Source: Guillardia theta CCMP2712
Lineage: Eukaryota > Protista > Cryptophyta
Direction of reading: 5' to 3'
Length of the DNA: 33,411 nt
Assembly: GCF_000315625.1 (NCBI RefSeq)
Contig: NW_005434577.1
Location: 1-33,411 of the forward strand
How positions within the stretch are numbered: the stretch's first letter is position 1; each line of letters starts with the position of its first letter. Positions 3,730-15,863 of the stretch are shown piece by piece. A model generated the notes under the pieces. It had not been told where the DNA came from and made no database searches. It saw only the letters and a program-made list of their open reading frames with translations. A program made the position numbers and the translations under genes.

Positions 3730-4704
3730 ATGGAAGAAAACATCCACCCGGGGCCTGCTCGAACCGCGGGCTCTTCACAGGACTCCCGAGACGACACCCG
3801 CGTTCAAGATGCTCACAGTGAGTTTCCCAGCTGCTGGTTCGACTTCCTCGTGGAGACGGCCAGCAGACCGGGCTACCACCTGCACAGGGAGCTCGTAGCA
3901 TCGAGGGAAACGATCCTCGGCAAAGACAAGATGAAGATCCTCTGCTCCTCCCACCCGCTCAAGTGGTTTTTGGCCATGAGGCCGTTCCAGTTCCTCCTCT
4001 TCCTATTCGCTGTCATCATCGTCCTTGCACCCTGGAGCAGGACGGCAGTATGGGCGCGCCCTTCCCCGCCCTTGCCCCACGTTCCTCCCTCCCGCTTCTT
4101 TCGATTCACCGCGAGGAGGCTGCGGAATGGGCAAGAAGGAAGCCAGATCTCCTCTCATGGCGTCTCCTCCTTTGGGATCTTGTCGAAAGGCTGCAGACTA
4201 CCCAGCGCTTACCAGCCGTCCGCGGAGGATGCGAACCAGTCGTACGTGACCTACTCCTCCTCCTCCTCCTCCTCCCTCCTCCTGGAGTTCCGGGAAGCTG
4301 TGCAGTTCGATGGCTGGTTCCTGGTGGGCTCCAACTGGACTGACGAGCATGCACCTGTCGACTTCACTCTAGAGTCTTCGAGCGACGGGACACACTGGCT
4401 AGTCTTCGTGTTTTCCGGCACCTGCTCCCTCAACAGAGTGGTCAACGTTTCCGACTCTCCCCAGCTGCCCAGCGAGCTGTACTCCTCCCTTGGAACTCCG
4501 CTGGAGCAGGAGGAGCTGGTTCTGTTCGAGTGGAGCTCCATGGGCTGCGTGTGGCCTTTCTACGTCAGCATCCTCGTCCGATGCTGCCAGGCTCTTGGCA
4601 TCCTCCTCGCCATCGTTGCTGCCACCTACCACCAGCACTCGCGATCAGTGCAGGTTGTAGTTCGAACATGTTTGGATGGTGATGATGATGATGACGATGA
4701 TGAC

Positions 4705-4736
<32 letters not shown>

Positions 4737-6132
4737 CAACGACGATAGTGATGATAATGGAGACGATGATGATGATGATCGGGATGGGGATGGGGATGAA
4801 GTTGGAGGCGATGACATTGATCGATTTTCGTGTAGATCTTCTGCGTGGGTTACTTCGTCTCGGCACTGATTGACATCATCACCTTTTCTGTCAAGCACGA
4901 AAGTCTCCTCTGGTCTTCCCCCACCTCCGACCTCGTCGAGGCTCTAACTGTGAGCCTCCTCCCTCCCTCCCTCCCTCCCTCCCTCCCTCCCATCCCTCCC
5001 TCCCTCCCTTCCTCCCTCCCCTCCCCTCCCCTCCCCTCCCCTCCCTCCCTCCCTCCTCTCCCTAACCTCCCCTCCCTCCCCTAACCTCCCCTTCCTCCCT
5101 CCCATCCCTCCCTCCCTCTTCTCCTTCCAAGTGCTCCCCTGACAACTCTCTCAGATCCTCTTTGTCTTCCCCTGCCCCCTCCTGCTGGACGAGTCGTTGG
5201 TGCTGGAGCTGGGGTTGATTTCAGGGATTATCTTGAGCGTTTCCGTTGGGCTCTTGGACAGGAACGCCAGCTACATATATGTGGTGCTGGTATTTCTTGC
5301 TCTGATTCTACTGCGGGAGCATCTCAAGCGGGAGTCGAGGAGGAGGTTGTCTCGATTCGCTCACAAGTCGGAGGAGAGGTGGCAGGCAGTTGTTGCCGAG
5401 ACGGATCAGAGCACGCTGCTGGCCCTATCTGAGCTGCACAACAACTTTGTACGGAGGAAGGGTGGGACCTTGGTTCAGGTCCGCGTGTCGTTGCGGGAGA
5501 TGTTGGAGGTGGCAGGAGAGGGGAGTGTGCTCGGGTCCGTCGGTATCGCCGACTCCTCCTCTCCTCCCCATCACTTCTCCAACATCGCCACCCCCAGCCA
5601 CTCCTCTCACCCCGCCTTCGCCTCCTTCGCCTCTGCCGTCTTGTCCTCGGAGCAGGCGATCGCTTCCTTCGACCAGCTGTACGCGCAGGCCGTCACGTGC
5701 AACGAGCTCTTCAGGAGGAAGATCGCGCTGCTGGTAGCGAGCTGGAAGGAAAGCAACCCAAGGGCCTCCATCAGCTTCATCCCCCTCCCCGTCAAGAGCG
5801 TCTCCTCCTGCCAGGAGAAGATCCTCTGGAACTACGACGGGGACGTCTCGAGGCTGCTGGACGTGGTGAGGCAGCGGGTGGTGCTGGGGAGGGTCGAGGA
5901 GCTTCTCAGCTTCTTCGAGAGCATCAGGAAGGACGATGATCTGAAGCTAGTGAGGGTAAAGAACAGGTTCGACCCCAACTACAGCAGTGAGAGGTCAGGA
6001 GGGTACCGCGACCTCTGCCTGAAGCTCCGGCTGGTTACTCCAGACACTCGCTTCTTCGGCACCCTCGCCCTCGTCTGCGAACTTCGGCTCGCGCTACAGC
6101 AGCTGCAGGAGGAGGGAGCAGCAGGATCAAGC

Positions 6133-6185
<53 letters not shown>

Positions 6186-8486
6186 CGGCACAACAGCAGA
6201 AGCAGAAGCAGGAGCAGGCGCAGGAGCAGGAGACGGCACAGCAGCAGCAGCAGCAGGAGCAGGAGCAGGAGCAGGCGCAGGAGCTGGGGCAGGGGCACCG
6301 GTGGTGGACGATGCTATCAATCGCTTCCGCCGCCTGCACAAGTTCAGCCTGAGGAGGAGGGTCGGCACCATGATCGCGCGCCTGACGCCTCGGCTGCAAG
6401 CGCTCAAGGTTGACCAGCAGCGTGTCCGTCGGCTCTCGAGGATCTGCATCGACGCGTTCAGGCAGGGTGATGACGCGGCAACGTCCCTCGACACCTTCTA
6501 CCGCTCAGCCATCCGCGACCTCTCAGTGCTCAAGAGGTTCAAGGACAACCTGCGGCAGAAGTGCCTGTTTGCGGGAGACACCCTAGACGCTCGCCTGCTG
6601 GAGCTGCGCCATGCAGTGAAGCGAGCTGGAGTCTCCAGCGTGCTCTTCACCTCCATCCCCTGCACCCTGGCGATCCAGAAGCCCTGGTTCAAGCTCGTGC
6701 TCCTCGCGTGCGGCCTCTACTTCCTCCTCTACGTCTTCGGTCCCGGCGAGAGGATGCAGGAGGTGGCGCGAGGGAATAAGTTCTCCGTGAAGCTCGCCAA
6801 GCTCACTGTCCTGCAGCGGCGGGAGGAGGGCTGGAAGTCCAACTACACGCTCAGAGCTGGGTTCATGCTGAACGGGTGCAGGGTCGGCGACGAGGCCAAG
6901 TGGGAGGAGGACGGGGAGAATTTCTACTTCTCCCTGCCCTCCCTGCTGACCGCCAACTCCTGGTACTTCATCACTGACAGCCGCCAGGACAGTGCAGGAG
7001 GCGATCCCGTCCGCTTCGAGCTCCGCGTCTCCTCCTCCTCCTCCTCCAGCTCCGCCAGGCAGGTCCCGCCCGACAGCTGGGAGCTCGTGTCGGGACCGAT
7101 TGCCTTTGGAGCCTGACGGGGACGGGCTGCGTTCCCAGCTCGTCTGTGCAGTACGGGACGAGCTTGGAGAGGTCAGCTGAGAATGTTGTCCAGCTGCAGT
7201 GCCCCTGGTACCATGTGGTTGGATCTGTCTTCGTCTACCTCCCGATGATTGCAGGATGCATCCTGGGGCCAGTGCTGAGTGCGGCGGGGAGGACGAGGTC
7301 GGGGATCCTGACGTTCTCCCTTGCGTTCTGGGCTCCGGGGGTGATGGAGATCTTTGTTGGGATCATGTTTGCTCGGGAGGGGCGGGAGGTCAACATGGTG
7401 TACTGGATGACGCTGGGACTGTCGTCGTTGGCCATGGGCGTAATCCTGGTGCTCAAGGAGGAGCTCTTCCTGCCTTACATCCCGTTTCACTTCCTGGTGT
7501 GCGTTTTCGGGCTCAACTTCCATACCCGGTATGTCTTCCGCCAGGCCCAAGTCGAGGTGCCCCTCTCCGCTTCTATCCTCTTCTTCTCGTGGGTTGCTGT
7601 GTGGCTGCTGAGGAGGATAGCGATCTATCGCTCCTCCCTTGCGATCAGGGACGACGTTCGCAAGTACGACGAGACTTGGTCCAGTCTCCTGCAGCAGCCC
7701 GAGACCTCCCAGACCCTCCTGGACCTCCGCAGCACCGTCGACTCCTTCCCCTCCTTGCGCACCGACTTGATCTTGCAGGAGCAGCAGGAGCAGGAGCAGG
7801 AGCAGAGTCATGGACACGGAAACGGAGAAGGACGGGAAGAGGAGAAAAGGGAGGGTTCGAGGATCATCGACGTCTTTGCTCGCTTCTTGCGGATCTCGAA
7901 GAAGAGGAGGAGAAGAAATGCGATTGTGTGCCTGGATCAGCTGTACAACCAGGCGATGCTCTTGGAGCTTCCTTTCCTTCTTAAGGTCCAGTCCCTGACA
8001 AGGCAGTGCGGGGGCTACGTCCAGGTCGTGGAGGACAGCAACGAGCCAGTGTGGGTCAAGTACAGCCATACGGAGGAGGAGCTCACGTATAAGTGGGCAG
8101 AGCTGAAGAGCGTCGACCGATCGATCGAAAAGCTCAGCAGGTCGTACAAGGGACGCGCGTCTCGCCTGCTCGACGTGGTCCGGCAGTGTATCGTCTTCGA
8201 TTCACTGGAGGCGATCGTGGGCTGCCTGCGGCTGATCGCGGAGGACGAGGAGCTGAGAACCCTGCGGGTGAAGAACAGGTTCGACCCGAGCTACAGAACG
8301 GATCTTTCTGGGGGGTACCGTGACGTCTGCCTGAACGTCCAGCTGAGGACGGAGGAGACGAGGAGGATGAGGATTGACCAGCACGTCTGTGAGCTGCAGC
8401 TCTCCCTGAGAGAGTACAAAGTCTGGACTGTGCAGGGCAATGGACACAAGCGATACGTTGCGTACCGCAACCACAGGGGAGAGTGA
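3730..8486 (+). CDS. Polytopic membrane protein (~1,450 aa) of two tandem modules: TM, discoidin/galactose-binding-like ectodomain, 5 TM, RelA/SpoT-like nucleotidyltransferase
   Basis: Exons 3730-4653, 4836-4949, 5155-8486, with a frame discontinuity at ~7092. NT1: KSVSSCQEKI..DVSRLLDVVRQR..RVKNRFDP..GGYRDL..VCELRL. NT2: LKSVDRSIEKL..RLLDVVRQ..RVKNRFDP..GGYRDV..HVCELQL. Ectodomains: FDGWFL..APVDFTLESSSDGTHW and ANSWYF..DPVRFELRVS..SW. Confidence 0.8.
4677..4800 (+). repeat. (GAT)n microsatellite in intron 4654-4835
   Basis: Directly visible. Confidence 0.95.
6115..6295 (+). repeat. In-frame (GCA)n/(GCAGGA)n tract encoding a poly-Ala/Ala-Gly linker after NT1
   Basis: Lies inside the 5197-7116 open frame; no convincing flanking splice sites. 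Confidence 0.8.
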
Positions 8487-15148: not shown

Positions 15149-15863
15149 TCAGGAGGAGGAGGAGGAGGATTTTTCTACTGAAACCTCTCGGTAGTGCTGC
15201 ATCATTTTCTCGGTCTCTTTGCAATTTTCCGGTTGCTCGAATTCTTGCATGTTTTCATCGTTTTTCCTGTAGTCTATGATATGAAAACATCCGTGTACAA
15301 CATCTTGTTGTTTCACTTCATTCAATACAACAAAGTTTACATAAGCATTAATTTCATCAAACATTCATCACTCCAGATTTCTATCGTAATCATCTCCATC
15401 CTCCTCCCTGCTCCCCCTCCTCCTCCCCCTTCTCCTTCCTATGCAAGCCTCACACAGCAGCCGAAGGAAACGACGACATCTAACGTTCTGTCACTTTCTC
15501 CTCCCTTCGACTCATCACATCTCACCTCCTGTACTTTCTCCTTCGCCCACAGTTCAAGCGCTTTCCTCCCCGCCTCCCGCGCCGCCCCCAGCGCCTCCTG
15601 CAGTTGCTTCCACCAACGTTTTCCCTCCAGCTCTGCTACCATCGTCAGCCTCCCTCCTTTCCTCTCTCCTCTTCTCCTCTCTCCTCCTCTCCCTTCCTCT
15701 CCTCTCCTCCCCTCCCTTCCTCTCCTCTCCTCTCCTCTCCGCTCCGCTCCCCTCACCTCCTCTNNNNNNNNNNNNNNNNNNNNNNNNNNNNNNNNNNNNN
15801 NNNNNNNNNNNNNNNNNNNNNNNNNNNNNNNNNNNNNNNNNNNNNNNNNNNNNNNNNNNNNNN

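Follow-up and report, generated by a model that had tools for sequence, protein, structure and literature searches.

Alarmone synthetases are known as soluble stress enzymes of bacteria and plastids and as bacterial toxins, and the use of (p)ppGpp-like nucleotides in eukaryotic cytosols is a long-standing open question. Unplaced eukaryotic small alarmone synthetases (SAS) and the disputed ppGpp of Dictyostelium have been discussed before (Atkinson 2011, PMC3153485). The stretch of DNA analysed here, called the window, comprises positions 1 to 33,411 of contig NW_005434577.1 of the cryptophyte Guillardia theta CCMP2712 (contig C97 of the genome assembly that we screened, 87,145,349 bp in 669 contigs). 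An earlier note, made from the sequence alone, read a gene at positions 3730-8486 as encoding a tandem of membrane-bound RelA/SpoT-like synthetases, which raises the question of whether such enzymes are built into a eukaryotic membrane and what they would do there. We found that this part of the forward (+) strand, on which all window coordinates below lie, is a single expressed nuclear gene with a product of 1456 amino acids (aa). The protein consists of two homologous modules, each with a transmembrane (TM) helix, a putative beta-sandwich loop, five further TM helices, juxtamembrane helices and a RelA/SpoT-type nucleotidyltransferase (NT) domain, named NT1 and NT2. It is well supported that the RelA/SpoT homologue (RSH) superfamily, itself known, is present here in a polytopic, tandem and massively expanded eukaryotic form.

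The identity of the NT domains was examined by sequence and by structure. NT1 (5653..6126, aa 513-670) was delimited as a diverged RelA/SpoT-like synthetase domain by Pfam, NCBIfam, BLASTP and a hidden Markov model (HMM) of the family, and NT2 (7917..8483, aa 1268-1456), which carries the full family signature and the C-terminal end GHKRYVAYRNHRGE, by AlphaFold2 (AF2) and Foldseek. The only Pfam match of each domain was RelA_SpoT (PF04607), and it was weak (E ~0.06, with 14.1 bits for NT1 and 14.0 bits for NT2); NT1 matched RelA_SpoT with E 0.057 and the NCBIfam model YjbM with E 0.002. Eight of 41 family members reached E<=0.1 with PF04607, the best of them 7.4e-7. NT2 alone returned nothing significant from the PDB by phmmer, and a profile of the 41 family NT domains matched Tas1 (E 5.8e-4 over 50 residues) and RelP/YwaC (E 4e-3 over 106 residues) there. 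The AF2 model of NT2 had a predicted local distance difference test score (pLDDT) of 91.6, and its top 50 Foldseek matches were exclusively RSH synthetases (RelP, RelQ, CapRel, Tas1, FaRel2, Rel and RelA), with no other fold at the place where the earlier note had expected this one (~7920-8483). Exhaustive structural comparison by VIA, using the NT domain from a module model of the paralogue P0071, gave RelP with Z 12.2 (root-mean-square deviation, rmsd, 2.9 over 149 residues), RelQ with Z 11.4, Tas1 with Z 10.6 and CapRel with Z 10.4. Tas1 therefore stands ahead of RelP by profile and behind it by structure. The membership of both NT domains in the RSH synthetase fold, as first proposed from their motifs, is well supported.

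The catalytic residues were located through an alignment with YwaC. The family positions K70, K78, R81, D92, Y140 and E165 correspond to Lys80, Lys88, Arg91, Asp107, Tyr151 and Glu174 of RelP, and each of the six is either invariant or shows at least 90% conservation across the family; NT2 keeps all of them together with Q167. Based on the phosphate-, Mg-, acceptor- and ribose-binding roles described for RelP (PMC5794853), K70, K78 and R81 would bind the ATP phosphates, D92 and E165 would bind Mg2+, and Y140 would be the G-loop tyrosine at the acceptor base. The ribose-binding histidine is kept by its spacing, as H183 in the terminal GHKRYxxxRN motif. Nearly all terminal NT domains of the family stop 3-5 residues past the invariant GH.RY...RN, usually with R-x-E-COOH. 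Hence, judged by its residues, NT2 is most likely an active ATP-dependent pyrophosphokinase, which would move pyrophosphate from ATP onto the 3'-OH of an acceptor nucleotide and yield a (p)ppGpp- or (p)ppApp-like product. Besides the weak RelA_SpoT matches, no HD, TGS or ACT domain was found by Pfam in any exon product, in agreement with the note.

The note had also recognised an internal duplication, and this was borne out. By BLASTP, NT1 and NT2 share 37% of their residues over 166 aa (E 1e-27), and no other part of the duplicated module is nearly as well conserved. The two halves made of TM1 and loop showed no pairwise similarity by BLASTP (E 7). Since exon 1 matched a profile of 45 module sequences (hhalign probability 98.3%, E 2e-14, 237 columns), the whole module is duplicated. 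The motifs quoted for the two halves were found again at the positions given: KILCSSHP and SVLFTSIP lie 5-8 residues ahead of TM1 and of its counterpart TM1' and match the family-wide motif SVxFxSxP, the loop signature is the family consensus ANG..F...DPV.F...W, and DQLY.QA, DVVRQ, KNRF, GGYRD and CEL.L occur in both halves. SVxFxSxP belongs to the juxtamembrane helix that opens each module, and DQLYxQA closes the cytosolic helices ahead of the NT domain. One motif had been misspaced, as the proposed K-S-x4-EK is actually K-S-x5-E-K.

Kyte-Doolittle hydropathy of the corrected protein predicted 6 + 6 TM helices. In module 1, TM1 (3970-4026, aa 81-99) is followed by loop 1 (4027..4563, aa 100-278), which was delimited by hhalign to the module profile, is predicted to form an extracytosolic beta-sandwich and has 3 Cys and 3 N-x-S/T sequons. 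TM2 (4564-4620) still lies in exon 1, and the whole stretch from TM2 to TM6 (4564..5325, aa 279-403; Kyte-Doolittle peaks) is interrupted by both introns. In module 2, the motif SVLFTSIP and TM1' were placed by motif comparison and hydropathy at 6640..6741 (aa 842-875), with TM1' itself at 6685-6741 (aa 857-875). Loop 2 (6742..7226, aa 876-1037), likewise a predicted extracytosolic beta-sandwich, has 4 Cys and is 45% identical to the loop of the paralogue P0052, and the hydropathy peaks of TM2'-TM6' (7227..7619, aa 1038-1168) appear as five long helices in the paralogue model. Clusters of Lys and Arg follow TM6 (7 of 15 residues) and TM6' (4 of 15), and the loops contain 3-4 Cys, of which one is conserved to at least 90% across the family, as well as N-x-S/T sequons. 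These features suggest that the N-terminus, the linker and both NT domains are cytosolic and that the beta-sandwich loops are outside or lumenal. The proposed order of six TM helices, catalytic domain, six TM helices and catalytic domain was thus recovered, and by hydropathy and charge bias the N-terminus and the two NT domains share one side of the membrane. No N-terminal signal or transit peptide was seen by hydropathy, the first 80 residues being hydrophilic, and the note had likewise seen no plastid-targeting leader.

The gene has two introns, not three, and hence three exons. Exon 1 (3730..4653, aa 1-308) begins at the first in-frame ATG past an upstream stop and encodes the predicted cytosolic N-terminus, KILCSSHP, TM1, loop 1 and TM2. 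Intron 1 (4654..4835, 182 nt, GT..AG) is rich in GAT repeats, exon 2 (4836..4949, aa 309-346) encodes TM3 and the start of TM4 according to hydropathy, and intron 2 (4950..5154, 205 nt, GT..AG) is rich in CCCT repeats. Exon 3 (5155..8486) encodes aa 347-1456 and the stop. A transcriptome-like contig from a public run (X1) is spliced as 4289-4651|4834-4949|5155-6096; it skips intron 1, with the junction 4651(+2)|4834(+2) at GT..AG ends, and jumps from 4949 to 5155, and therefore both introns are removed in RNA. A DNA-like contig (X9) also contains the intron sequence 5122-5154. Both introns are mostly microsatellite, (GAT)n/(GATGAC)n in intron 1 and (CCCT/CCCTCC)n in intron 2, and contigs from public runs break at these repeats.

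Near 7090-7150 the reading frame appears to change. A third intron at 7087-7151 or 7063-7151 was considered and ruled out, since an RNA-like X1 contig (6420-7579) and a DNA-like X9 contig (6367-7673) are both colinear across 7087-7151 and carry one extra G behind 7091. The extra base is present at full depth in each (31.3/31.3 in X1 and 5.56/5.56 in X9). Because both contigs carry it, the reference assembly is one G short at the GGGG run 7091-7094, where it reads GGG, which makes the frame appear to shift and creates a false TGA at 7114. With the missing G counted, exon 3 is one continuous open frame, and the corrected coding sequence has 4371 nt with its sole stop at the end. The corrected reading, SGTDCLW..., aligns through the junction with the paralogues P0052 and P0071. 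A one-base error thus splits the gene in the reference assembly, and comparison of contigs corrects it. Elsewhere in the window, an assembly gap of 100 N occupies 15764-15863.

The two NT domains are unequal. For 30 tandem relatives and the window protein, each NT domain was aligned to the family HMM and scored at 24 signature positions. In every complete tandem protein NT2 has 0-4 changes at these positions and NT1 has 3-14; the window protein has none in NT2 and 10 in NT1. Window NT1, which matches the family HMM at C97:5656-6111 with E 9e-35, keeps K, K, D, Y, KNR, GYRD and E, but four family-invariant residues are altered (R74S, N146K, H162L and Q167R). Its C-terminal His motif is lost, the His of the last helix being replaced by Phe, and its tail contains an Ala/Gly-rich low-complexity insert (6112..6297, aa 666-727) encoded by GCA/GGA repeats. 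Since this 62-aa insert is absent from the two closest paralogues, P0052 (contig C103) and P0071 (contig C64), it is a recent expansion of a coding microsatellite. In these two paralogues NT1 has diverged further, GGYRD being changed to LGHVRD and LGQVRD. The altered positions make it more likely that window NT1 is a regulatory or weakened copy. A predicted complex of NT1 and NT2 scored 0.12, which is below the mark of the tool and is evidence neither for nor against an interaction. Some tandem paralogues, among them P0054 (C5:16372-19047), P0063 and P0053 (C206), have NT1 and NT2 that are 78-98% identical to each other and 50% different from all other genes, with only the last helix (the ELQ...GHKRY tail) staying different between the two, a pattern that points to intragenic gene conversion or very recent re-duplication.

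The loops were assessed through the full-module model of the paralogue P0071 (residues 700-1337, pLDDT 87), which is 54% and 47% identical to the two module-2 pieces of the window. Along the chain, the model has TM1, then an all-beta domain with its strands at 81-219, five long helices, a set of helices on the cytosolic side and lastly the NT domain. VIA aligned the loop (residues 82-220) with at least seven PLAT/LH2 domains at Z 6.0-6.8 and rmsd 3.3-4.0 over about 100 residues, a range that VIA classes as common arrangement; the matches included the C-domain of alpha-toxin (Z 6.8), pancreatic lipase-related protein 2 (6.4), lipoxygenases (6.1-6.4) and lipoprotein lipase (6.0). The loops had no Pfam match, including to PLAT (PF01477) and F5/8 type C (PF00754 and PF22633), and no discoidin domain was among the 50 VIA rows listed for the module model. 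A language-model search gave a weak lead (0.85) to F5/8 type C clusters. The model therefore supports the loops as beta-sandwiches, with a PLAT-like fold as the best yet modest match; of the comparison drawn in the note with F5/8-type discoidin domains, the beta-sandwich part held and the discoidin part did not. The TM bundle matched TMEM45A and rhodopsin-like bundles at Z 6-8.4, a range that VIA itself calls uninformative.

The window gene belongs to a large family. The family NT profile gave 112 matches in the G. theta genome, including about 30 tandem genes, in which same-strand NT pairs lie about 2.1 kb apart within single open frames of about 1020-1140 aa, about 20 single-module paralogues, and about 25 weaker matches in long open reading frames (ORFs) of other, Pfam-silent architectures. 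The paralogues P0071 and P0003 are annotated as GUITHDRAFT_113149, a single protein of 1337 aa, and GUITHDRAFT_122928 (identical ORFs). Identity among the paralogues is 46-53% in the NT domain, 21-24% in the loop and 18-24% in the TM part, which is the pattern of a conserved putative output joined to variable candidate sensors. Canonical RSH genes with HD_4 and RelA_SpoT domains are found at only two loci in the genome. Of 41 family members searched against NCBIfam and PADLOC, one matched YjbM (3.5e-5) and none matched a defence-system model. Outside this genome, a search of 1.84 billion representative proteins gave 6577 matches at E<=1e-3, of which 548 reached E<=1e-30. Two NT stretches, in proteins of 927-1744 aa, occur in at least 29 of the 150 best-scoring representatives, among them an MMETSP transcript and a cluster with Rhodomonas salina. 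The named members come from the cryptophytes Guillardia, Hanusia and Rhodomonas and from MMETSP transcripts; further eukaryotes, diatoms among them, come from Tara Oceans contigs and ESM Atlas clusters, as do forms of the domain fused to TPR or ankyrin repeats. A homologue search with exon 3, swamped by low complexity, returned only P0052, one Hanusia protein and one metagenome protein, and the product of the window gene itself was not found among proteins of 359-1142 aa. The automatic UniRef name of the paralogue L1IYI8 is 'RelA/SpoT domain-containing protein', and literature searches on Guillardia, cryptophytes and eukaryotes brought up no description of the family or of its membrane and tandem architecture.

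Several further observations were made on the family. The tandem genes form local clusters (C1:833989-836607 with 840439-843057, and C30:477353-529490), and one near-identical pair is inverted, at C206:46645-49368 (-) and 54322-57045 (+), with open frames of 1514 and 1498 aa; this arrangement indicates probable ongoing segmental duplication. Six of the weakly matching ORFs (803-1086 aa; C8:276500-283500, C4, C229, C100, C37 and C16) end in a more distant NT-like domain (family HMM E 1e-14 to 1e-21), and they resemble additional branches of the superfamily with another architecture. Pfam found no domains in these six or in ten long single-module relatives. On Tara Oceans contigs of up to 59 kb, a 294-aa NT gene call (P0024, 44 contigs) lies directly downstream of a 1341-aa ORF and near genes for cNMP-binding and FKBP proteins, and it probably represents the final exon of a longer gene from an uncultured marine eukaryote.

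For the function, we lean slightly towards a membrane sensor-enzyme of a large lineage-specific family, with an active RSH-type NT2, a regulatory or weakened NT1 and a sensing role for the loops and TM parts. The variable loops and TM parts would sense something across the membrane and control the conserved cytosolic enzyme. The ligand-gated surface receptor making a second messenger that the note envisaged is plausible. A bolder proposal is that cryptophytes and other marine protists possess a large family of membrane receptors with an alarmone-type cytosolic output ((p)ppGpp, (p)ppApp or a new product), that is, a non-plastid second-messenger or immune-effector system built on a bacterial stringent-response enzyme, in which a diverged NT1 would regulate a catalytic NT2 in an adenylyl-cyclase-like tandem layout; this we hold only tentatively and think rather doubtful.

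Several results weigh against the sensor-enzyme that we favor, and some of them speak for other explanations. The PF04607 scores of both NT domains are under the 27-bit gathering threshold, and the PF04607 model detected no family member in the genome screen. The adenine-stacking residues of RelP, Arg78 and Arg112, are not conserved, and a DxxR[QN] arrangement common with Tas1 is found instead; because of this replacement, substrate and product are not readable from the sequence. The topology was derived from hydropathy and charge bias, and the full-module model comes from a 45-54% identical paralogue, not from the window protein. The sub-threshold Pfam scores and the non-conserved arginines, together with the middling matches of the TM bundle to TMEM45A and rhodopsin-like bundles, would suit a channel, transporter or adhesion protein that senses ATP or alarmones and in which both NT domains are inactive nucleotide-binding or scaffolding modules. 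However, the helical-bundle matches are all in the uninformative range, and the Mg-, phosphate- and acceptor-binding positions of NT2 are under strong purifying selection in all complete tandem proteins, and we regard this explanation as very unlikely. The high identity of NT1 and NT2 in some paralogues also means that 'NT1 = pseudo-enzyme' is no family rule, and the degeneration of NT1 is therefore a trait of subfamilies and not of the whole family. A further weakness concerns positions 6097-6419 (GCA/GGA repeats), which public contigs leave uncovered, so that the continuity of the mRNA at the junction of NT1 and module 2 is taken from the open frame and the paralogues. Two neighboring single-module genes misread as one would leave the same gap unbridged by RNA-like contigs, and the family does have single-module genes. 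We give this almost no credence, since an open frame runs from 5155 to 8486 and no stop separates NT1 from module 2, contig depths are similar on either side of the gap (29.8 and 31.3), NT1 lacks the C-terminal ending common to all terminal NT domains, and two NT domains in one protein recur in the tandem paralogues, in the annotated GUITHDRAFT_113149 and in the two-NT representatives mentioned above.

The resemblance to Tas1 leads to a serious rival, in which the protein is a Tas1/ToxSAS-like effector that depletes ATP through (p)ppApp or pyrophosphorylates tRNA 3' ends as CapRel and FaRel2 do, and in which the members of the family act as receptors for immunity or cell death directed at viruses, bacteria or grazers. 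Tas1 is the top PDB match of the family profile, and the two have in common the stretch IKS..RA..K...YKGD...D..R[NQ].I. with its DxxR arrangement; the structural matches include CapRel and FaRel2, immune receptor families typically show a large lineage-specific expansion and fast-evolving ectodomains, and the ESM Atlas neighbors include the TPR- and ankyrin-fused forms. Yet the Tas1 match spans 50 residues only and RelP and RelQ are equal or better by structure, none of the PADLOC defence models fits, the gene has no evident immunity or antitoxin partner, and it is constitutively present, at moderate depth, in transcriptome-like contigs. On balance we consider an effector unlikely. The genome's only HD_4 hydrolases, those of the two canonical RSH genes, also count against a cytosolic signal, as no obvious degrading enzyme would be at hand in the cytosol. 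They could degrade the product in the plastid, and the known function of RSH proteins in algae and plants is plastidial (PMC6881373, PMC10107265), as expected if the protein were located in an organelle membrane (plastid envelope, periplastidial or ER-derived) and fed the plastid (p)ppGpp pool. Against such a location, the hydrophilic N-terminus carries no signal peptide or bipartite leader, the conserved Cys and sequons of the loops suggest an oxidising, secretory-type compartment, and about 50 paralogues are far above the need of a housekeeping plastid function. We find this location improbable.

The window protein stands for about 50 polytopic membrane proteins of this genome in which an RSH synthetase domain with an intact active-site signature is the best-conserved part and is coupled to fast-evolving, predicted extracytosolic beta-sandwich loops, mostly in tandem. 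They are candidates for studying membrane-receptor-coupled alarmone synthesis in a eukaryote, which products a Tas1-like branch of the superfamily makes, and how a tandem, asymmetric RSH pair works. Such an expanded family hints at nucleotide-alarmone signalling at eukaryotic membranes.

Compared with known systems, the NT domains have the catalytic fold of RelP and RelQ (Z 11-12, rmsd ~2.9 Å over ~150 residues) and conserve the phosphate-binding K-x7-K-x2-R, the Mg-binding Asp and Glu, the G-loop Tyr and the C-terminal His. They differ in identity (15-20%), in Pfam scores below threshold and in not conserving Arg78 and Arg112. SAS such as RelP and RelQ are soluble bacterial homotetramers of about 200 aa, whereas here the domain is the predicted cytosolic tail of a 6-TM module and occurs twice per nuclear-encoded chain; with 12 predicted TM helices and two NT domains in 1456 aa, the protein is not a stand-alone, soluble, single-domain synthetase. 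Tas1 (PDB 6ox6), the best PDB match of the family profile, has the stretch K-S-x2-R-A-x2-K...Y-K-G-D...D-x2-R-[NQ] in common with the family, but the sequence match is limited to the first third of the domain. Tas1 is a secreted type VI effector of P. aeruginosa that synthesises (p)ppApp and comes with an immunity protein, while the present protein is membrane-embedded and eukaryotic, with no secretion apparatus or immunity gene.

Among eukaryotic relatives, divRel comprises unplaced, divergent SAS in Dictyostelium, Aspergillus and the diatoms Thalassiosira and Phaeodactylum (PMC3153485). Like the window gene it is eukaryotic and has a synthetase domain and no HD hydrolase, and the ESM Atlas neighbors of NT2 include diatom clusters; PMC3153485, however, gives no membrane or tandem architecture for divRel. 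The plastid enzymes RSH1-4 belong to the same superfamily, of which G. theta also has the two canonical HD_4 and RelA_SpoT genes, but the window protein has no HD, TGS, ACT or EF-hand domain and no targeting leader, is a polytopic membrane protein and belongs to a form expanded about 50-fold. The loop model aligns with the PLAT/LH2 domains of lipoxygenases, lipases and the C-domain of clostridial alpha-toxin, at Z values that may reflect common arrangement only, and neither sequence comparison nor Pfam links it to them. Most PLAT domains bind lipids and are cytosolic or secreted, whereas the loops are inserted between TM1 and TM2 and predicted to be extracytosolic. The analogy of the note with membrane adenylyl cyclases holds for topology only; the active site lies at the C1/C2 interface in class III cyclases and within one domain in RSH enzymes. 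The catalytic folds are also unrelated, no PF00211 match was found here, and the cyclases are without a large beta-sandwich loop between TM1 and TM2. What the two systems have in common is the layout, in which a 6-TM block and a cytosolic nucleotide-converting domain alternate twice, with unequal catalytic copies.

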